The notes beneath the pieces are model-generated. The model saw nothing but the letters and a program-made list of their open reading frames with translations, searched no databases and was not told the DNA's origin. A DNA stretch of 64,000 nucleotides from Diplonema japonicum (lineage: Eukaryota; Protista; Euglenozoa: Diplonemea). Positions 3,055 through 51,086 of the stretch are shown here, in pieces; the stretch's first letter is position 1; each line of letters starts with the position of its first letter. The position numbers and the translations under genes are program-made. The DNA is taken from NCBI GenBank assembly GCA_964019335.1, contig OZ025651.1, forward strand, positions 372,001 to 436,000, read 5' to 3'.

Positions 3055-4260
3055 TTAACGATGGTCCCACGGGTTGTGTGCAAACTCGTAGTCGATGTGG
3101 ACATAGGCACGGTTCACGTCGTCGGTCTTCTCAAGAACGATCTGAAGGGACTCGCCAATGTCGTGGGACTCCCTCAGGGGCATCTCGGGGGGGAGTACAA
3201 TGTCCACCTCCACCTGGTAGCCGTCCCCACCGAGCGCCACAGCACGCACAGTGTCCACGAAGAGAATGGAAGGGTGGTGGTGGCGGGCACACCACGTGAG
3301 CTTCCTGATGACCTCGGGAGGTGCAGACCGCCCAGACAGCGCCATGATCTGCTCGTACCCCGTTGTCGCCCAGGTGTGCATGATGTAGAAGGTGATCAGG
3401 ATGGCCGCAATGGGGTCGATGCTCATGAAGCCCGAGTACACAGCCCCAAAGGCGGCCGCAAGCCCGAAGGTGTTGCTGAGGACATCGTTCCGGTGGTCCG
3501 AAGCCAGTGCCTGCAGCGAGGGGGACCCTTCCTTGTGGGCATTGCAGTACACATAAAGACCCGCCTTCACGAGAATGACGCAAGAAATGAACACGATGGA
3601 GAACACATCAACCTCGATTTCCAGGTTCTGTGCAATCAGCACATCTGCAGCGTACTTCAGAAGCTGGAAGGACGCTGTGAACATGCAAGCTGAGAAGACA
3701 AGCGTCCCGAGGGGTTCGAAGGTACGCTTGCCAAGGGGGTACTTGTGCACGTTGTTCTCGTTCACAAGCTTGTTCGTGGCCACAAGGGTCACCCCAGAGA
3801 TGAGGTCCAAAACAGAGTCCAAAAGGGAGGCAAGGAAGGCAACAGAACCCGATTTCACCACCACAACTGTCTTCGCTGCCAAGATGATGATGTTTGCAAG
3901 GAGGGACCCCCGCACCCCGAAAGTCACGTGGCTTCCCTTTTCTTCCTCGTCCTCCTCCTCCACGAGGCCCCTGCGAACACGGTCACGGACAGTGTCCATC
4001 GCAATGAAGCTGTCGATGGCCTCGTTCTGCCCGATGTAGAAGTCCTTTGTCACCTCGCTGTTCGTTCTGGTGTCCACCTTGGGCAGCTTCCCTGCCTTCC
4101 CCCCTTCGGGGTTCTCGTTAAGACAGTGGATCGGGTTCGTCACAACAGGCTGGTACCTTGCATGATGCAGCAACAGCCCCTCGTCGCAGCTGCTGGGTGT
4201 CCTCTCCAACAGCACCACGTCATCTTCACTAGAAGGCACATTCCCCACAGGCTCCGTCAT
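3055..4260 (-). CDS. Cation diffusion facilitator, Mn-CDF (MTP8-11-like) transporter, copy 1
   Basis: SLLDSVLD (DxxxD), KYPLGKRTFEPLG, DHRND, C-terminal VEVDIVLP..ESHDIGESLQ..RAYVHIDYE dimerisation domain. Confidence 0.9.
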   Translation of the reverse strand: MTEPVGNVPSSEDDVVLLERTPSSCDEGLLLHHARYQPVVTNPIHCLNENPEGGKAGKLPKVDTRTNSEVTKDFYIGQNEAIDSFIAMDTVRDRVRRGLVEEEDEEEKGSHVTFGVRGSLLANIIILAAKTVVVVKSGSVAFLASLLDSVLDLISGVTLVATNKLVNENNVHKYPLGKRTFEPLGTLVFSACMFTASFQLLKYAADVLIAQNLEIEVDVFSIVFISCVILVKAGLYVYCNAHKEGSPSLQALASDHRNDVLSNTFGLAAAFGAVYSGFMSIDPIAAILITFYIMHTWATTGYEQIMALSGRSAPPEVIRKLTWCARHHHPSILFVDTVRAVALGGDGYQVEVDIVLPPEMPLRESHDIGESLQIVLEKTDDVNRAYVHIDYEFAHNPWDHR

Positions 4261-4914
4261 GGTTGTTGTTCGCCTTATTATTATCTTTTAAGCACAAATG
4301 GGGAGTGGGGGGGTTTTTTTTTTATTTGTTTAGGCGGGTATCCTAGGGCAGCATGTAAAGATAAGAATTATTTCAGTCTTTTCGTTCGTTCCTAGAAGAA
4401 ACAACTGCAAAGTTGGCAAAACAGTTTGCTTTATTTGGAACATGTTCACATAGGCAGCCGGTGGGACAGGAAGACAGAATACGCATTCCTTTTTTTTTTT
4501 TCTTATTGTGAAGGGAGTTTTCCCCTTAAAAAAGCTTGGCTCTCCGTGCCTTCGCTTGTTGCAATTTCGTTTCGTGAAATCAACCGGACAACACCTTCAC
4601 GCCTCAAGAACCAAGGACAAAAAAAAAACCCCCCCTCGGGCCGAACATGGCAAGAAATTGGTCAGTATTGAGGGGGAATAAAGATGGAATGAAAACAGAA
4701 AAGAAATGCGTGTGAAGAAAGGAACTGAACAATTTAAAAGGGGCGGTGGGGACGTCTGAGAAAAGAGTTGCCTCCAATGCCCCCAAAAAAAATAAAAAAA
4801 TAAATACCCACAAGGTAGCCAATAATAGAGAAGTGGTTCGCACTTCGTCAATTATTTCCTATTTGCTTCGCACCAAAAATCATATCATCTCAAGAAAAGA
4901 GCGCTGTCACTTCT

Positions 4915-6664: not shown

Positions 6665-7870
6665 TTAACGATGGTCCCACGGGTTGTGTGCAAACTCGTA
6701 GTCGATGTGGACATAGGCACGGTTCACGTCGTCGGTCTTCTCAAGAACGATCTGAAGGGACTCGCCAATGTCGTGGGACTCCCTCAGGGGCATCTCGGGG
6801 GGGAGTACAATGTCCACCTCCACCTGGTAGCCGTCCCCACCGAGCGCCACAGCACGCACAGTGTCCACGAAGAGAATGGAAGGGTGGTGGTGGCGGGCAC
6901 ACCACGTGAGCTTCCTGATGACCTCGGGAGGTGCAGACCGCCCAGACAGCGCCATGATCTGCTCGTACCCCGTTGTCGCCCAGGTGTGCATGATGTAGAA
7001 GGTGATCAGGATGGCCGCAATGGGGTCGATGCTCATGAAGCCCGAGTACACAGCCCCAAAGGCGGCCGCAAGCCCGAAGGTGTTGCTGAGGACATCGTTC
7101 CGGTGGTCCGAAGCCAGTGCCTGCAGCGAGGGGGACCCTTCCTTGTGGGCATTGCAGTACACATAAAGACCCGCCTTCACGAGAATGACGCAAGAAATGA
7201 ACACGATGGAGAACACATCAACCTCGATTTCCAGGTTCTGTGCAATCAGCACATCTGCAGCGTACTTCAGAAGCTGGAAGGACGCTGTGAACATGCAAGC
7301 TGAGAAGACAAGCGTCCCGAGGGGTTCGAAGGTACGCTTGCCAAGGGGGTACTTGTGCACGTTGTTCTCGTTCACAAGCTTGTTCGTGGCCACAAGGGTC
7401 ACCCCAGAGATGAGGTCCAAAACAGAGTCCAAAAGGGAGGCAAGGAAGGCAACAGAACCCGATTTCACCACCACAACTGTCTTCGCTGCCAAGATGATGA
7501 TGTTTGCAAGGAGGGACCCCCGCACCCCGAAAGTCACGTGGCTTCCCTTTTCTTCCTCGTCCTCCTCCTCCACGAGGCCCCTGCGAACACGGTCACGGAC
7601 AGTGTCCATCGCAATGAAGCTGTCGATGGCCTCGTTCTGCCCGATGTAGAAGTCCTTTGTCACCTCGCTGTTCGTTCTGGTGTCCACCTTGGGCAGCTTC
7701 CCTGCCTTCCCCCCTTCGGGGTTCTCGTTAAGACAGTGGATCGGGTTCGTCACAACAGGCTGGTACCTTGCATGATGCAGCAACAGCCCCTCGTCGCAGC
7801 TGCTGGGTGTCCTCTCCAACAGCACCACGTCATCTTCACTAGAAGGCACATTCCCCACAGGCTCCGTCAT
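6665..7870 (-). CDS. Mn-CDF transporter, copy 2 (protein identical to copy 1)
   Basis: Translation identical to 3055-4260 from ATG 7870; the upstream ORF extension is low-complexity UTR. Confidence 0.9.
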   Translation of the reverse strand: MTEPVGNVPSSEDDVVLLERTPSSCDEGLLLHHARYQPVVTNPIHCLNENPEGGKAGKLPKVDTRTNSEVTKDFYIGQNEAIDSFIAMDTVRDRVRRGLVEEEDEEEKGSHVTFGVRGSLLANIIILAAKTVVVVKSGSVAFLASLLDSVLDLISGVTLVATNKLVNENNVHKYPLGKRTFEPLGTLVFSACMFTASFQLLKYAADVLIAQNLEIEVDVFSIVFISCVILVKAGLYVYCNAHKEGSPSLQALASDHRNDVLSNTFGLAAAFGAVYSGFMSIDPIAAILITFYIMHTWATTGYEQIMALSGRSAPPEVIRKLTWCARHHHPSILFVDTVRAVALGGDGYQVEVDIVLPPEMPLRESHDIGESLQIVLEKTDDVNRAYVHIDYEFAHNPWDHR

Positions 7871-8506
7871 GGTTGTTATTTGCTTGTTTTTGTGTACTCT
7901 TTTCAGTTTTCTTTTTTTGTTTTGTTTTTTTGCAGCGAAAAAAATTTGAGGAGTAATAAAAAAGGCGGGGGAGGACAAAAAAGGGGGAAGGGGTATATAT
8001 AAAGAAATGAGCCGCCCAAAAAACTCTTTTTTTAGGTTATTATTATTGTCTTTTATGCAGAGCACGATTTGCTATTTCGAAATGCCGTCGTTTTCTTTTC
8101 TTTTTTATTGTTCTCTTTTTTTTTCCCCCTTAAAAAAACTTTTAAAAAAGAGGCTGCATCGGACAAAATAAAAAAAAAAAAAAAAAAAAAAAAACAAAGT
8201 AAAAAAACAGATACATATTTTTTTTTTTTCAGAAGGACGTGTGGCCAGGCTGTAATAAAAAAAAAAACAAAAGAAAAGGGTCGGTTTTTAGCATTTTGTT
8301 TGAGCACACGGTATAAAAAAATCCTGAGGATAAATACTGCATGTTTGCCACTACTTTTTTTTTTTTTTTCCTCTTTTTTTCCCTTGCTCTTACAAGAAAC
8401 TGAGCAGTACTTGTTAAAATACAAAAAAAAGGGGGGGGGAAAGATGGGTAATAATTGTGTTTTTTTTTGCTTCTTTTTTTTTTTTTTTTTTTTTTGAAGG
8501 CAGGGG

Positions 8507-44208: not shown

Positions 44209-44450
44209 AATGCTCGCAAACGCTGCTCTGACACAAAGTTTTGAGCGTTCAGGGGATTCTGACTTTGTTCATTATTTTCAGAACAACAAAAAAAGGGGTG
44301 GATTCGGTCCTTTATGGGTTATACAAATAAAAGAAAATCGAACTATTAAGGTGTTCCCACCCCGTCAAGGGACAAAAAAAAAAAAAAAAAAAAAAAAAAA
44401 CTCGATAAAATTTCAGTGTGCATGGGGGTGCTCACTGTTCAGGTAGAAAT

Positions 44451-47400
44451 TCACACTAATCGGTCACCGTTCTGCGGTTGCTGTCTGGTGCCTGCGGTGG
44501 CTGTTTGTCGCGATGAGATGGACGGCATCTGGGCGAGAAACACTGCTTGGAGTCGTGCTAGGTAGGGGGGGGTTTGGCTCGAGGAGAAGAGTGGTCTCCT
44601 GTCGTAGCCGTGTGCCGTCGGGCCCCCAAGATGTCGAAGGGTATGCACCCTTGATTTGGCGTTGGCGGGGAAGGCTGACCTTCCACAGCGTGCTGAGCAT
44701 TTCTGGATGCGACCCAAGATGTATCGCATCCTTGCGGCCTTCTCCGTGAGCAGGTCCTGATCGTCGAGGGGACCTATGAGTGACCGGCGGGTGGTCTGCT
44801 CATAGTCTATGGCGAGTTCCATTGTAGTGACGGAAGTTTTCTTCTTACCATCGTACCATCGTAGGCCTCTTAGCCACTTGAGGACGTTCTTCAGATGAAA
44901 GGTCAGGACCGCGCCTGACGCCCCGTTCGCCTTCAGCAACGCTTCCGTCGGAACATCATGTTGCCTCCCTGTCGTTACCTCATCCCAAGGGTTGGAGGTG
45001 AGCACTCTCTTGCTTTTTTCCGCTGCTCTGGCGTCACGGACCGTCACTACTTTCAGGAGGTATTGTTGCACCATCCTGGCACGTTCTTTCCCTGCTTTGT
45101 CGGCTCCTCTTGGGACTATCCCGTGAAGGGCTGTGGCAGCTGGGAGGCCTTCTCGCTTCACCTCTGCGTATTGCTCGCTTTCCAACACACTCCTTGCCGG
45201 CTCGCACTCCCACAGTGCATGCTCCGTCATGCTGGTCGTTGTCTGGGACCGGTGGTCGCAAACGTCACACGCTAATGCTGGGTTTTCCACACCAGGGCCA
45301 TCCAATTTTCTCCCCCACACCCTCGGGTGAGTCGTGAACACTGCACCACTAATGATGCGCCGCAACCTAAAGGACACCAACGGTCTCCGGGCCTGGAGCT
45401 TTTTCCACCAATAGTTCGTGGACGGGCACGCCCCTGCCTCCATCCCCACGAAGGTTGATCTCTTCTCGATCAGCCTCTTCGCAACTGCCGGTCTGATGGC
45501 TTGCCTCACTTTGTGAGCCACCGCTGTATCTCCGTGCAGGTCGGCCACAAAGGACCATCCCTTCCCCAGAAAGGGGAGCCATCTGTTCCGCAGGACTCCA
45601 ATCGGACCCATCACCTCATCGTCATCACGGTCCTGGTATAGACCAATGATCTCACCAACACGCTGCCGCAAACGCGGAGAGGCCAGGCTCTCCCGGACCA
45701 AGCTGTTTATCGTTCCGTAGATGACCTTCGACAGCGGATGTGGCAGCAGAACGCTCAGTACAGACACGGGGTTTCTCATCCCGAACTGGGGGCCCCACAG
45801 GGAGACCACTGCCGCTGTACACATCTTCTTCAGCTGGTCGTCCGAGGGTGCCGCATACGTTGCTCCGTACAGACACGACGGTAGCACAGTGCTCGTCAAC
45901 ATCGTCGACTTGTTCTCAAACCCTAGTGGCAAAGCTCCGAGACGGGTCAGGCGTCCCTCCGCTGCGTCCAGCTTGTCCAGCCTGTGATTCCCATCCATGC
46001 TCAGGTTCACGCCAAGTGATTTGATCTCCCCAGCTACCTTGAACGAGGAACCGGTGCATACTAAACTAGGGCCGATCTCGTTTTTCGTCGAGAATCCCTG
46101 CGACTTCTTTCCGTTGAGGCGCATCTCTGTCCGGTCCCCGAACTCGATCACCTTGTTGGTCGCCCTTGTCAGGACCTCCGCTAAACGCGCCAGGAGGTAC
46201 ACGTCATCCGCGTACGAAAGTGACCAAGCTCCTGGTACTTCCGTCATCACGCACTTCACCATCACCGACACCAAGGCGTTCACCATGATTACCGAGATGG
46301 GGCACCCTTGCAGGATACCATTCGTCACTCGGAACTCTGAGCCAACACCTGTCGGGAAACGGAATCGCCGCTTCAGGTTCGCATACATAGCTTTCAAGGG
46401 GGTCAGTATCCGCTCGTGCAAACCGAGATCTTGCATCAGGCCAAAAGCTATCTGCTGTGGGACTCTGTCGAAGCACTTGACAAAATCCAACGCAATGCCG
46501 TTGAGAGGGGTGCCTGTCAACAGCGCCTCTTCGAGCTGTGTACTGAGCTCCATCAGAATGCTATCCGTGCCTCTCTTCGGTCTGAAACCATGCTGAGAGT
46601 CGTCGATCCACTTCTCTTGCCACAGCGTGATGTCACGCAGCCTCGCACATGCCCACAGCCGATAGACCGCGCTCGTGACTGTGATCGGCCGATGGTTCAG
46701 AGGAGTCCTCTCGCCACCCTTCGGGATCAACGTCACCAGCGCTGTCAGGAGTGCTTTCGGCCACTTCCCTGTCGTCTCGACTGCGTTGAACAGCTCGGCC
46801 CAAGCATCCAGCAGTACTACCGGCATGGCACGCAGTTCCGCCATCCTCCATCCATCCACCCCTGGAGCCGTTCTCGTTGACTTCTTGGCCAACACCGCCC
46901 TCAGATCCTCTCCTGTAAGTGGTCGAAGTTCCATCTTCTGCGACACGATGTACTCCCTGTACCTCGTTCTAAAGGCGTTGTACTGCGGCTCTCCTCGATC
47001 CCCACCGTACAGCTGAAAAATAGGGTCCCACTCCTTGTGCATCATCTTGTCCATCTCTTCAAGATCTGCCGTGAGAACCCCGTCGCCTTCCACTGCCTGC
47101 GTTGCTGATGCCGTTGTGCCCTTCACGAAGGCGGTCACCCTCTTCCGTTCCTCCTTGAAGTGGGTGTTGATCCTCTCTTCATACTTCCTTTCACGCTCGA
47201 CCCTCGCGTCCTTTGCGATCACTCGCGCCAGAGCGGACAGGTCGTCGTCTAGGCGTTGAAGTTTGATGATAATCGTTTCAAAATTGTCCTTCATCAGACC
47301 CACCTCGCATCTCGGAAGCTGCGGGAGCTTCGCTAACACCTTTATAGCATTCGCCCAAGTCCTCAGCAGCTGCTCCGGCATGTTGCTTGCTAGTCCCCTG

Positions 47401-48557
47401 TCGAGCAAATCTTGGACTCCCGCAAGGATGTGCGAGACTTTCCGCTTCACCTCGGCGATGCACTTCTGCCAGCCCACTGCCGCACCTGTCGCCTCAACCA
47501 CAGATTTCGCCGACAGGCACTTCTCCTTTGGTTGTCGCGCCACGCTTCTCCCGACGTAGGCCCTCCGTCTCACCGCTGGCAGGTCCCCGATGCAGCATTC
47601 CTCCGAAACGCACGCTAACGTACTATACGCATCGTCAATGTCGCCGTCGCCCAGCTTCTGCGCAAATCCCCCGACCTGTAGCAGCTCAGCAACTCGGTCA
47701 CCATCAGCAGCTTCCATCGGCAACTCCCTCGGGACGAAGTATTTCCTCGTCATGCACTTGAGGGCCGGGATCCGGAGCTGGATTGAGAGGCAGCGGTGCT
47801 CGTTGGTGTAGACTGCGTCGTGTACCCACACCTTCTGTAGGCCTGCCGCCGCGATCGGGTTCAGCAGAACGTAGTCGATACGCGTCTTCGTGTTGGTGGC
47901 CTGCCTGGCAAAGGTGTGGCATGGTTCCACGCCATCCCTCTCGGCTTGCAGCATAGCAGCATCCACCCAATCGCTCCCCACCGCCTGTTGTAGCACTCCC
48001 GACTGTGACACCGCGGTGTTGAAATCGCCTGCCACGATGATCGGTACGTCACCGAGGACGCATCTCATCTTGTTCAGGACCTTATCCAGCAGAGCCTCCC
48101 GCTGGTGCTTGCCGTGACCGCCCGAGTGACAGTAGACTACGATCAGGTGTAACCACATATCTCGACCATCTAGGTTGATCATCGAGTGTACCCACCTGTT
48201 GTCGTCAGCTCTTCCTGCCGTATCTTTTACCAGAGCAGGTCGGCGTCGCTGCACCAGCAGACCCACCCCGCCCCTCTTCGCCTTATCAGGAGACGCGAGT
48301 CCATCGACCACGATGCCTGGTTGCGGGCTCCCCCACAACGCGCGATACCTACCGTCGTCCTCGACGTGTCTCCCAACCATCTCCTGACCGTGCTCCGTCA
48401 GCTTCACTTCCTGCAGGCATGTCACGTCGCTCCCCATAGCCAGGACCTCGTCAACCTTGTTGCTCAGGGACCCCACATTGAGTGTGGTGATTATGAGCGA
48501 ATCGGGGTCCCTGGCGCCACCCGACTGGACGTCCCTCCGGACGTCCCAGTCCGCACT
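44451..48557 (-). CDS. Retrotransposon ORF2: APE endonuclease + reverse transcriptase + CCHC-type finger; no AUG before the first APE motif, in frame with ORF1
   Basis: LIITTLNVGSL, CLQE, AGDFN, TRIDYVL; APGVDG, LIPK, RPIT, QHGFRP, LDFVKCFD, GILQGCPIS, YADD; CDVC..EHALWEC. Frame is open back to the ORF1 stop. Confidence 0.92.
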   Translation of the reverse strand, partial: SADWDVRRDVQSGGARDPDSLIITTLNVGSLSNKVDEVLAMGSDVTCLQEVKLTEHGQEMVGRHVEDDGRYRALWGSPQPGIVVDGLASPDKAKRGGVGLLVQRRRPALVKDTAGRADDNRWVHSMINLDGRDMWLHLIVVYCHSGGHGKHQREALLDKVLNKMRCVLGDVPIIVAGDFNTAVSQSGVLQQAVGSDWVDAAMLQAERDGVEPCHTFARQATNTKTRIDYVLLNPIAAAGLQKVWVHDAVYTNEHRCLSIQLRIPALKCMTRKYFVPRELPMEAADGDRVAELLQVGGFAQKLGDGDIDDAYSTLACVSEECCIGDLPAVRRRAYVGRSVARQPKEKCLSAKSVVEATGAAVGWQKCIAEVKRKVSHILAGVQDLLDRGLASNMPEQLLRTWANAIKVLAKLPQLPRCEVGLMKDNFETIIIKLQRLDDDLSALARVIAKDARVERERKYEERINTHFKEERKRVTAFVKGTTASATQAVEGDGVLTADLEEMDKMMHKEWDPIFQLYGGDRGEPQYNAFRTRYREYIVSQKMELRPLTGEDLRAVLAKKSTRTAPGVDGWRMAELRAMPVVLLDAWAELFNAVETTGKWPKALLTALVTLIPKGGERTPLNHRPITVTSAVYRLWACARLRDITLWQEKWIDDSQHGFRPKRGTDSILMELSTQLEEALLTGTPLNGIALDFVKCFDRVPQQIAFGLMQDLGLHERILTPLKAMYANLKRRFRFPTGVGSEFRVTNGILQGCPISVIMVNALVSVMVKCVMTEVPGAWSLSYADDVYLLARLAEVLTRATNKVIEFGDRTEMRLNGKKSQGFSTKNEIGPSLVCTGSSFKVAGEIKSLGVNLSMDGNHRLDKLDAAEGRLTRLGALPLGFENKSTMLTSTVLPSCLYGATYAAPSDDQLKKMCTAAVVSLWGPQFGMRNPVSVLSVLLPHPLSKVIYGTINSLVRESLASPRLRQRVGEIIGLYQDRDDDEVMGPIGVLRNRWLPFLGKGWSFVADLHGDTAVAHKVRQAIRPAVAKRLIEKRSTFVGMEAGACPSTNYWWKKLQARRPLVSFRLRRIISGAVFTTHPRVWGRKLDGPGVENPALACDVCDHRSQTTTSMTEHALWECEPARSVLESEQYAEVKREGLPAATALHGIVPRGADKAGKERARMVQQYLLKVVTVRDARAAEKSKRVLTSNPWDEVTTGRQHDVPTEALLKANGASGAVLTFHLKNVLKWLRGLRWYDGKKKTSVTTMELAIDYEQTTRRSLIGPLDDQDLLTEKAARMRYILGRIQKCSARCGRSAFPANAKSRVHTLRHLGGPTAHGYDRRPLFSSSQTPPYLARLQAVFLAQMPSISSRQTATAGTRQQPQNGDRLV
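48523..48551 (-). promoter_or_regulatory. Candidate readthrough-stimulating RNA hairpin 6 nt 3' of the ORF1 UGA
   Basis: Sense strand: UGA AGUGCG GACUGGGACGUCC GGAG GGACGUCCAGUC (12 bp, one bulged G). Confidence 0.55.
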
Positions 48558-50987
48558 TCAATTGAACTCGGTGTCGATGTCCTGGACAGCCAGGGGGGCG
48601 ACCATCGGGGTTAGCTGCTGCTGCACAGGTGTCCCGCCAGCTGCCGCGGCACAAAGGGGGGTGCTGTTGGGCATGATCATCGGCGTCATCTCCCTGCCTA
48701 TTCCAGCGGTGGGGACAAGGGCACCTGAGGCCGCTTTCTTGTTGCCCGGCTCGTCCTCGCACTTCCTCTTCCCGCCTGTCTTCCTTGCCGCTTTCGCCTG
48801 TGCCTGCATCTCCTTTTGGATTGAGCCCACCGCCTGTGCGAGGTTGTTCACCGCAGAAGCAATCACGTCCAATTGCTCCAGACGTGCAGCCATCACTCCC
48901 ATCTGCTCGCTCAGCGTTTGCACGTTCTGTTGCACGGACATCAACAGGTTGGCCGTCGACGCGTTCTTCCTCTCCATGTCGACGAGCCGGGCCTCCATGG
49001 TCTTCCTCTCCTGTTCGTTCTCCAGTTCCATCCTTCGCGCCCATTCCACGAACTGGTCGGTGGATGCGGTACCGGAGGTCGCAGATGGCGGTGCCGACGC
49101 CGGCGCCTGCATCACCGGTGTCGTCTGCGGTTTGCAGAAATGCGTCGACTGCCCAGACTGCTGCGCTTGCCCAGGCTGCTGTGTCTCGGTCGCTTGTGGT
49201 TGAGGTTGAACTCCCGGTTGGGGTGCTGCAGTTGGATTCGGTGCTGGCCCAGCTTGTCTTCCCCACACGGCGTTCGGCGGCAAGGTGAAGACCGGCGTGT
49301 TCTTCACCTCCTTCTTCTTCTTATTCTTGCCCACCCTCAGCAGGTCCCCTTCCATCGGCTGGATGGCCCACCTCACTCCCTGGACTGTCAACACCAAGCT
49401 CCTTGGTTCGGTCGTCGCAGTCACCACCCACGTCTGTCTGCCACCATGCCTGTGCAGCTTCTTCCTCACCGTTGCTGGCCACCCGGAACGGCTCAGCTTG
49501 CCCTCGAGCTCCAGCCCGTTCATTGCTACCGGGACTCCCTGCACCTCGTAGTGGGCACCCTCCAGCAGGTCTACGGCGGTCGCTGTTGTCTTCAGATCTG
49601 CATGGCGGTCCTTGAGGATCTGCCTTGCGGTGTTGAGTCCGTCCTTTGGCACCCGAACGCCGTACGTGACAGTCTTGCTCGATTTTTTCAGGGTCAAACC
49701 CCATCCGCCGATGTCATTCTTCATCTTCAGGGCAACCTTCAGAGCCGTGTTCTCCAGCCAGATCACTGGCAGCAGGTCACGCGCCTCCCAAGGCTGCCTG
49801 ACGAAAACGCCGTCCTCTCCGCTGCGCGTTAGGATCGCCTTAACGTCTTCCTTCTTTACCGTGATCGGTATTTCTAAAATACCGTCCTTCTTTCTGCCCC
49901 TCTTAGCGAGGTACCTCCCTGCGCGTTCTCTCAGCCATGCCAGCAGACGCGGCCGAGCTTTCTCGGCGTCCTGCGTCGTCTGCGCCAGGAGAAAAAGCTC
50001 TGCAGTGCACGTGGGCTCAGGCTCCTTCTCCTCCGTCTCCTCCATGTCCTCGACAGTCTCGCTAGTGGGCATTGCCGGGTCGCCGTGCCTTGCCGTCACG
50101 TACAGGCGCCTGTACGTCTTGCCACGTCCCTCGTTTGTCACCAGGAGGACCTCCGCCATCTTACCGCAGAAGTAGGGTAATCGTCCCCAGGAAACCACCG
50201 TCGCCGCTGCCGTCCCCTTCAGCCACTCTGCCGCCTGTCGCTCATCACCCTGCGGCACCAGGTACACCGCGCGCTCTTGCACCGTCTCCGGGCCCTGCCA
50301 CTCCTGCACGTGGACCTGCCACTCATCTCCATCGAGGCACCCCTCGACGGGCTTGCGTACTTCTTTCTTCTCGGGCTTCGAACCACCCTTGGCCACGCTG
50401 CGTAGAGGAATGGGGTATCTCGGCCTCGGCTCATACTCATCTGCGTCCGGCTTCCTCGCTCCTTCCTCCCTGCTGAGACACACGTAGTGGTCTCTCACAT
50501 ACCCTAGCCACAGCTCCTGTGTGGTCACCATCCCACCCACCGGCCTGGAGGTGGTGCACACCAGGCGGTCGTCCCGGACCGCGTACACACAGATCACGCG
50601 GCCCATGGCTCGCGCCAGGGCATTCACCGCCATCCGGTCTCCCCACGTCCCCGGAAGAGCCACCAGCCGCTGGTACTCCTTCCACGCCCCCTCCGGGTCC
50701 TCTCCAATCATGAAGGACGAGAAGTCCTTCGTCGCCAGGTCTGCCGCCACTGCCTCCCTTAGGGCAGCGGCCCCGTCTCGCGCTCCGTGCACCGCGTATG
50801 AGGCTGCCTCATACAAGCAGTCTCCCGGCCTCCTCCCCACGTCTTGGACCTTCCAGCCCATCCCCAGCCTGCCGGCTAGGTCGCCCACCGCTTCTCCTTG
50901 CCTGGTGGATTCGCCAGACCCCCCTTTTGGAGGAGCCTGCCCAGGAACCGCCCTCGTGGAGGCTCCACCTCGGCCTTTTGGTGGCAT
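48558..50987 (-). CDS. Retrotransposon ORF1: N-terminal OTU-like cysteine protease, central domain, C-terminal coiled coil
   Basis: PGDCLYEA..LREAVA..TWGD..NALA..ICVY..LWLGYVRDHYVCL (OTU Cys, WG and His-Tyr motifs); heptads near the C-terminus. Confidence 0.8.
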   Translation of the reverse strand: MPPKGRGGASTRAVPGQAPPKGGSGESTRQGEAVGDLAGRLGMGWKVQDVGRRPGDCLYEAASYAVHGARDGAAALREAVAADLATKDFSSFMIGEDPEGAWKEYQRLVALPGTWGDRMAVNALARAMGRVICVYAVRDDRLVCTTSRPVGGMVTTQELWLGYVRDHYVCLSREEGARKPDADEYEPRPRYPIPLRSVAKGGSKPEKKEVRKPVEGCLDGDEWQVHVQEWQGPETVQERAVYLVPQGDERQAAEWLKGTAAATVVSWGRLPYFCGKMAEVLLVTNEGRGKTYRRLYVTARHGDPAMPTSETVEDMEETEEKEPEPTCTAELFLLAQTTQDAEKARPRLLAWLRERAGRYLAKRGRKKDGILEIPITVKKEDVKAILTRSGEDGVFVRQPWEARDLLPVIWLENTALKVALKMKNDIGGWGLTLKKSSKTVTYGVRVPKDGLNTARQILKDRHADLKTTATAVDLLEGAHYEVQGVPVAMNGLELEGKLSRSGWPATVRKKLHRHGGRQTWVVTATTEPRSLVLTVQGVRWAIQPMEGDLLRVGKNKKKKEVKNTPVFTLPPNAVWGRQAGPAPNPTAAPQPGVQPQPQATETQQPGQAQQSGQSTHFCKPQTTPVMQAPASAPPSATSGTASTDQFVEWARRMELENEQERKTMEARLVDMERKNASTANLLMSVQQNVQTLSEQMGVMAARLEQLDVIASAVNNLAQAVGSIQKEMQAQAKAARKTGGKRKCEDEPGNKKAASGALVPTAGIGREMTPMIMPNSTPLCAAAAGGTPVQQQLTPMVAPLAVQDIDTEFN

Positions 50988-51086
50988 TTTGTCTTCGCGA
51001 CTTTTGATGTTAAAAACCCGAAACCCAGTGTTCCCTGGAAAAAAAAAACTGTACCCCTTTGTAAAAAAGGGTAGGGTAAAAACATT

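Follow-up and report, generated by a model that had tools for sequence, protein, structure and literature searches.

The stretch of DNA analysed here (the window) comprises 64,000 nucleotides of the diplonemid protist Diplonema japonicum (contig OZ025651.1, positions 372,001 to 436,000, assembly GCA_964019335.1). On its minus strand lies a full-length LINE-type retrotransposon (LINE, long interspersed nuclear element), without long terminal repeats (non-LTR) and 6,675 bp long, which we refer to as family A (Table 1). Its first open reading frame (ORF1) carries an OTU-like cysteine protease domain and ends at a UGA. Past this codon the ORF1 frame goes on for 1,368 stop-free codons up to the TGA at 44453-44451; the extension (ORF2) begins SADWDVRRDVQSGGARDPDSLIITTLNVGSL and runs into an apurinic/apyrimidinic endonuclease-like (APE) and a reverse transcriptase (RT) domain. 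ORF1 and the APE-RT frame together hold exactly one stop in 2,179 codons, and the junction between them reads, on the minus strand, GAG TTC AAT TGA AGT GCG GAC TGG GAC GTC CGG AGG GAC GTC CAG TCG GGT GGC. An APE followed by an RT within one ORF, as detected with Pfam, is the mark of APE-type non-LTR elements (LINEs); the RT domain matches the R2 and LINE-1 ORF2p structures with E values of 2e-15 to 7e-12 (phmmer), and Pfam found no RNase H domain in the element. The ORF2 start called by the program is a GTG (48476-48474) within TLNVGSL, and an ORF2 begun at the AUG at 48437-48435 would be deprived of the first endonuclease strand, including the conserved Asn. A sequence-only reading of this stretch had already described a non-LTR retrotransposon whose ORF1 ends in TEFN-UGA (48560-48558) with the frame open into APE, an ORF2 start that is a GTG inside APE motif 1 with the first AUG downstream of that motif, and a GC-rich 12-bp hairpin six nucleotides past the UGA (48551-48523). 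This anatomy is confirmed: the element has both domains, is multi-copy and has a common 3' end, the stop, the open frame and the two start codons lie as described, and the hairpin folds with a free energy (dG) of -22.8 kcal/mol.

Table 1. Features of the family A element (44374-51048 of the window) and the basis of each assignment
Feature	Position in window	Strand	Basis
Element ends	44374 (3'), ~51048 (5')	minus	points where identity with other genomic copies stops
ORF1, 809 amino acids (aa) counted from ATG, C-terminus ...DIDTEFN	48561-50987	minus	ORF list and translation
OTU-like cysteine protease domain, ORF1 aa 55-165	50493-50825	minus	Pfam PF02338, E 6.8e-7, above curated cut-off
Lone in-frame UGA separating ORF1 from the APE-RT frame, context AAU UGA A	48558-48560	minus	sequence
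Spacer between stop and hairpin, 6 nt, AGUGCG	48552-48557	minus	sequence and fold
Hairpin, GC-rich, 12 bp, one bulged G, GGAG loop	48523-48551 (5' arm 48551-48539; 3' arm 48534-48523)	minus	fold
S-G-G motif just 5' of APE	48516-48524	minus	junction alignments; corresponds to M-G-G (family B) and M-S-G-G (families C, D)
APE endonuclease domain (motif 1 TLNVGSL), ORF2-frame aa 25-234	47856-48485	minus	Pfam PF03372 Exo_endo_phos, E 2.5e-11
Earliest in-frame AUG of the ORF2 frame, 3' of APE motif 1	48435-48437	minus	sequence
RT domain, ORF2-frame aa 611-851	46005-46727	minus	Pfam PF00078 RVT_1, E 3.3e-19
ORF2 terminator TGA (TGA AUU)	44451-44453	minus	sequence

We searched the 62.5-Mb genome (132 contigs) for copies of the element. 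Twelve copies of family A extend across the junction, and seven of these are 100% identical over 501 bp; ORF1 is intact in at least six copies, with open frames of 820-863 aa, and several copies have both ORFs intact. The 3' end at 44374 is common to at least 40 copies, the majority 5'-truncated as is usual for LINEs, with truncation points at 48639, 48436, 48388 and 48382. Given the seven identical copies and those with intact ORFs, family A is a young and probably active element. In the 5'-truncated copies (window 48382-48639; loci L012, L025, L028 and L029), a long T-tract on the element strand comes immediately before the sequence of the element.

The junction stop is TGA in all twelve of these copies, in 13/13 genomic copies of a sister family, B (73% nucleotide identity to A, with two extra codons past the stop), and in 4/4 copies of another, C. 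As none of the 29 has a sense codon at this position, a one-off nonsense mutation is ruled out. Contigs about 95% identical to the element, from a public run labelled as another organism, cover the stop and the hairpin with no change listed. No letter other than TGA is listed at the stop in four public runs, nor any splice joint across the junction; regarding splicing out of the stop, this is weak evidence, since the runs consist of contigs of unknown library type. Reassignment of UGA is ruled out by the single UGA in 2,179 codons and by ORF2 itself terminating at UGA, so that in this element UGA is an ordinary stop and not a general sense codon. Selenocysteine is ruled out as a common mechanism, as the junction stop of a further family, D, is UAG.

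The APE domain, used as a protein query against the genome, identified related families, and the junction stretches of representatives (0.3-3.8 kb) were compared. In 11 of the 14 lineages (A, B, C, D, L065, L066, L067, L062/L075, L071, L072 and L068) a single stop stands in the same phase as the APE-RT frame, where one third was expected (binomial P = 7e-4, not a strict probability given that the lineages are related). Between this stop and APE motif 1 lie 24 to 107 codons that mostly resist alignment; up to a GG motif that precedes the APE domain the distance is 12, 14, 10 and 9 codons in A, B, C and D, likewise unalignable, yet the in-phase stop is kept. Across the spacers of the ten lineages tabulated the ORF1 frame has no stops, and the other two frames have stops in almost every case. 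Further lineages, from contigs C81 and C11, are deletion derivatives. We also considered families with a single ORF1-2A-ORF2 fusion of 2,036-2,185 aa and rejected them: the Cys-rich ORF1 lies in another frame, the ORF2 AUG overlaps the end of ORF1, and L077 is an indel mutant. In L063, L064, L069, L070 and L078, with open frames of 1,947-2,185 aa, the ORF2 frame is open for hundreds of codons upstream, across an ORF1 in another frame, and what lies upstream resembles purine-rich coding sequence translated in an alternative frame. Within the L065 family, one copy (L092, G000:C113:146810-147120) has acquired another in-phase TGA, five codons past the original one (AAA CGA to AAA TGA), and is probably dead.

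A known readthrough-promoting feature accompanies the in-phase stop in 10 of the 11 lineages, the exception being family C. Family D and its 88% subfamily read CAA UAG CAA UUA CAG, a context left intact although a 6-nt in-frame indel lies just upstream. In tobacco mosaic virus (TMV), and likewise in beet necrotic yellow vein virus, CAA-UYA 3' of the UAG serves as the type-I signal (PMC2754532), and CAAUUA is active in mammalian cells too (PMC13517186). Among the plant-virus type I/II contexts (UAG-CAA-UUA; UGA-CGG/CUA; PMC2754532), D thus has the first, and the UGA CUA of L071 and its 86% subfamily is found as well; L065 has UGA CUG and L062/L075 UGA CUC. These contexts belong to sister families, not to the copy in the window. 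The stop is UGA CAU in L066 and UGA CAG in L072. A, B, C, L067 and L068 share UGA A, with stable hairpins in A, B and L067. Overall, the base 3' of the in-phase stop is C in six lineages, A in five, and never G or U. On the 5' side, ORF1 ends in [DT/PD/QD]EFN before the UGA in A (48561-48572), in B and in the L071 family, whose APE domains are only about 40% identical; this shared end could reflect conservation of the C-terminus or of a nascent-peptide feature where recoding would take place.

The family A hairpin has a z-score of -3.05, and 2 of 200 dinucleotide shuffles fold equally well. At the same place family B has a longer imperfect rod with a dG of -25.8 and a z-score of -4.68. Its outer stem is CAUGAAGA/UCUUCAUG, compared with GACUGG/CCAGUC in A, and its 9-bp main stem, CCAUGAAGA/UCUUCAUGG, is unlike that outer stem of A at nearly every position; the comparison involves a 1-nt register shift and two lineages only. 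L067 has a 16-bp hairpin after an 8-nt spacer (z-score -5.28), and L068 only a long-range stem, unscored. Pairing is thus kept overall, without strict position-by-position covariation: B loses two inner pairs, and its outer stem has another sequence. Conservation of the hairpin, on which the sequence-only reading had made its proposal depend, therefore holds in part: B has a structure whose outer stem has changed in sequence, but the inner stem of B and family C do not follow.

Coding constraint is seen directly past the stop in relatives of family A. Over the first 50 codons past the stop, L071 and the subfamily at 86% identity differ by 8 synonymous and 5-6 non-synonymous changes, with a ratio of non-synonymous to synonymous rates (dN/dS) of 0.18-0.21; a shifted control frame gives 0-1 synonymous versus 14-16 non-synonymous changes, and the lone AUG in the stretch is not conserved. 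L062 and L075 give a post-stop dN/dS of 0.29 and differ by one in-frame 2-codon indel. In D and D2, the 78 nt past the stop are 97% identical and the ORF1 tail differs at 12/35 codons. This constraint indicates that ribosomes translate the ORF1 frame from the first post-stop codon in at least two relatives. In L071 (389-638) and L072 (contigs C58 and C42), the first ~30 post-stop codons encode a strongly hydrophobic stretch resembling a membrane anchor (LLRPLFLFLFALVTLITL; LSLPIIIIISLSIIDLLTF); it separates the leaky UGA from a 2A motif and is under purifying selection, with a dN/dS of about 0.2.

Families A-D lack a 2A motif upstream of APE; it is present in L062, L065, L066, L067, L071, L072, L073, L075 and the L070 and L064 types. 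In L065, L066, L075 and L067 the 2A peptide (NPGP/HPGP) lies in phase past the stop with no intervening AUG, as in LVEDGVEPNPGP. A 2A peptide works only if translated along with its upstream residues. The motifs, of the 2A/StopGo type, take the forms ..G[DI/V][EH]PNPGP or ..EPHPGP, adjoin APE on its upstream side and follow an in-phase UGA in most families. Loci with the motif include L063/L070/L078 and L064/L069; in three lineages ORF2 has its own AUG and the 2A lies in a short N-terminal leader.

According to these comparisons, the APE-RT of this APE-type non-LTR element is probably made by programmed readthrough of the ORF1 UGA. The sequence-only reading had proposed the same for the RT, and it gains support from the conservation of stop and phase, the leaky contexts and the post-stop constraint in two lineages. 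Most ribosomes would terminate at TEFN-UGA and yield abundant ORF1 protein. A minority would decode the UGA by a near-cognate tRNA, aided by the hairpin, which starts 6 nt downstream and would stand at the mRNA entrance of the ribosome. These ribosomes would proceed in frame into the APE-RT, giving a low ORF2:ORF1 ratio comparable to that of gammaretrovirus gag-pol readthrough. The occurrence of readthrough is what we infer, and its efficiency and the fate of the fusion protein are likewise predictions. In family A, no AUG occurs between the stop and APE motif 1 in any of the 12 copies, and yet the family has recently amplified.

Several observations weigh against readthrough. UGA-A is not a classically leaky tetranucleotide, and the ORF2 terminator is UGA-A too, so the case for family A hangs wholly on its hairpin. 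The inner half of the hairpin stem derives from GACGUC, a self-complementary hexamer present twice and encoding DV..DV; B has GACAUC in both places and loses two pairs, uncompensated. In family C the hairpin 6 nt past the stop is small and weak, and no structure is convincing. At 6 nt, the spacer of family A falls short of the 8 nt or more seen in murine leukaemia virus, Venezuelan equine encephalitis virus, Sindbis virus and Colorado tick fever virus (PMC13517186). The post-stop segment gives a dN/dS of 0.64 between A and B over 24 codons, a value that is uninformative because the segment is too short and constrained by structure. Nor is the clade uniform: in three of the 14 lineages (the L070 and L064 types and L073) ORF2 lies in another frame with its own AUG. 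The strongest counter-evidence comes from the M(S)GG position, 8-13 codons past the stop: where A has UCG (QSGG), an AUG has been retained in B (FMGG), C (AAMSGG) and D (AGMSGG), and the public transcriptome ORF calls for ORF2 of B and C start at that AUG.

Hence, one could argue that ORF2 is translated by termination-reinitiation or coupling, the 40S subunit staying on the RNA after the UGA, held by the hairpin, and restarting at an AUG in B, C and D or at a non-AUG codon in A. The AUG kept at the M(S)GG position makes reinitiation possible in those three families, and three relatives use their own AUG in another frame. There are also precedents: in SART1, ORF2 initiation is affected by a structure downstream of the UAAUG, and that of human L1 is regarded as AUG-independent (PMC3894237, PMC5009743). 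On the other hand, family A, the most recently amplified, has no AUG before APE motif 1 and only weak near-cognates (AUA, AUC) near the motif. Reinitiation needs no conservation of phase, yet the stop-free spacers keep phase in 11/14 lineages, and it leaves unexplained the TMV-type and UGA-CU contexts as well as the coding constraint that the L071 and L062 lineages show from the first post-stop codon onwards. After an 809-codon ORF it is, moreover, improbable according to a review (PMC3894237). We therefore regard reinitiation as an unlikely account of the junction.

A separate ORF2 mRNA is considerably less likely still. The host apparently uses spliced-leader trans-splicing, so that a spliced-leader acceptor or an internal promoter near the junction could supply such an mRNA and the in-frame stop would be incidental. 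A pyrimidine-rich tract followed by AG does lie 24 nt 5' of the stop; the spliced-leader pattern of dinoflagellates and Perkinsus is absent from the window. A separate mRNA would still have no AUG before APE motif 1 in family A, the four public runs have no joints at the junction, and five of five inspected 5'-truncated copies of family A are headed by T-tracts with no common leader. Moreover, it explains neither the conservation of phase nor the leaky contexts. We give hardly any credence to the absence of a mechanism, whether the stop and hairpin fell together by chance at an ORF boundary (the inner stem does arise from a duplicated self-complementary hexamer that also encodes Asp-Val, and human L1 ORFs, not known to use readthrough, are in phase as well) or the UGA is recoded as selenocysteine or a sense codon: z-scores of -3 to -5 in three independent lineages and an outer stem re-created in B with a different sequence oppose chance, and the UAG of family D, the ORF2-terminal UGA and the one UGA in 2,179 codons oppose recoding.

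If readthrough takes place, the OTU protease of the element itself may cut the ~2,180-aa fusion at the conserved GG motif. The catalytic motifs of the OTU domain, G[DE]C[LF][YF]EA and H[YF]V, are invariant in families A-D (36-59% identity), and an OTU homologous to that of family A is found only in these families, which lack 2A. In A-D the GG motif precedes APE motif 1 by 10-15 residues; the 2A cut of relatives precedes it by 8-18 residues, or by 52 in L067. In L068 (G000:C11:168650-170150, minus strand; open frame of 1,640 aa) a Cys-rich ORF1 ends in UGA-AAC and the frame continues into an OTU and then the APE-RT, so that the OTU stands directly past the in-phase UGA, on the ORF2 side, at the position where other families have 2A. 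The restriction of the OTU to the 2A-less families, together with its position in L068, would fit OTU and GG as a functional replacement of 2A. Whether the whole amounts to a gag-pro-pol-like programme in a LINE, with a UGA-readthrough polyprotein that the ORF1 OTU would cut after (M/S)(S)GG in place of 2A, is a speculative extension that we put forward tentatively and think rather doubtful. The S-G-G motif of family A is a candidate for one of two things, a protease cleavage site or an ancestral ORF2 start. Like arterivirus PLP2 and tymovirus PRO, the element has an OTU fold with catalytic Cys and His. In polyproteins of that type the cut falls, in cis or trans, at a domain boundary marked by small residues, typically GG, and the GG motif of A-D would be the predicted equivalent. 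If the programme were real, the recoding and processing modules at this junction would be naturally interchangeable across the clade, combining four kinds of leaky stop with either a 2A or a protease.

In order to contextualize these results, we compared the junction with known systems. Gammaretrovirus gag-pol and several RNA viruses are established examples of stop readthrough with a 3' structure (PMC13517186): Moloney murine leukaemia virus has UAG, an 8-nt spacer and a pseudoknot, and alphaviruses and Colorado tick fever virus have extended 3' stem-loops (Firth et al. 2011; PMC13517186). The junction of family A resembles those of gammaretroviruses and alphaviruses in its one in-phase stop, the stable RNA structure a few nucleotides downstream and the small fusion fraction expected, but differs from them in being that of a non-LTR element, with UGA-A, a 6-nt spacer and a simple 12-bp hairpin (a pseudoknot was not looked for). 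Among LTR retrotransposons, in-frame stops are known in Candida albicans Tca2 (gag-UGA-pol) and in soybean SIRE1 (env-like ORF) (PMC4700185, PMC5580714, PMC7385966); such elements are alike in expressing a downstream ORF by stop suppression and unlike in their LTR replication cycle and gag/pol architecture.

Within APE-type non-LTR elements, 2A peptides have been described in trypanosome L1Tc/ingi and in metazoan CR1/L2/Rex1-like elements (Odon et al. 2013, PMC3708506; PMC3894237). Sister families here likewise carry D(V/I)ExNPGP-like motifs directly 5' of APE. Unlike them, family A has no 2A, and the published 2A sequences occupy the N-terminal end of ORF2 or of an element's single ORF, with no upstream leaky stop described in PMC3894237. 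As for bicistronic LINEs, SART1 uses UAAUG coupling with a downstream structure, and human and mouse L1 unconventional reinitiation or an internal ribosome entry site (IRES). Family A shares with them a bicistronic LINE RNA, with SART1 a structure near the ORF1 stop and with human L1 an ORF2 initiation independent of AUG. However, it has neither an overlapping stop-start nor an AUG, its junction is a single stop and not a multi-stop spacer, and phase and leaky context are conserved across lineages.

How ORF2 is translated from a bicistronic LINE RNA is a long-standing open question, for which a 2013 review lists coupling, reinitiation and IRES, and not readthrough (PMC3894237). The genome analysed here offers about a dozen young, comparable LINE families in which the stop signal varies (TMV-type hexanucleotide, UGA-CU, or UGA-A with a hairpin), as does the possible separation of the proteins (2A peptide, possible OTU/GG cleavage, or nothing). 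Within the collection of papers covered, our literature searches retrieved no described case of readthrough in non-LTR elements. Amber suppression with a pseudoknot has reportedly been proposed for the ATLN-L/Ta11 LINEs of Arabidopsis, which would be a precedent if correct. The hairpin-type, 2A-less, OTU-bearing junction, together with the clade-wide census, would thus be a new variant of recoding, a process that is known but not established in this element class. If readthrough is true, gag-pol-style stop suppression extends to non-LTR retrotransposons and to a diplonemid protist. The junction cassettes, being short and naturally varied, would supply readthrough signals from a deep-branching eukaryote for comparison with viral ones.

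Regarding transcription, a protein search with ORF2 retrieved two EukProt ORFs from Trinity transcriptomes that correspond to the ORF2 of families B and C, called from the conserved AUG. Such elements are therefore transcribed, which says nothing on the mechanism. Protein searches with the whole ORF1 and with the OTU region gave no match and thus retrieved no public transcript carrying both ORF1 and ORF2. The parts on either side of the stop served as separate queries throughout. A metagenome scan with the APE alignment gave only distant matches (25-41% identity on short segments) and no usable junctions.

Finally, two further observations concern rearranged or neighbouring sequences. L026/L050 (G000:C19:~508,280) is a deletion derivative of family B in which ORF1 codon ~95, inside the OTU, is fused to the FMGG junction; the joint lies at a shared CATCTT microhomology and looks like the product of template switching or recombination. 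In the window, two minus-strand ORFs of 410 and 468 aa (3055-4287 and 6665-8071) end in an identical C-terminal peptide, DYEFAHNPWDHR, followed by TAA, and from this likeness the pair is taken to be a local duplicate or another repeat family.

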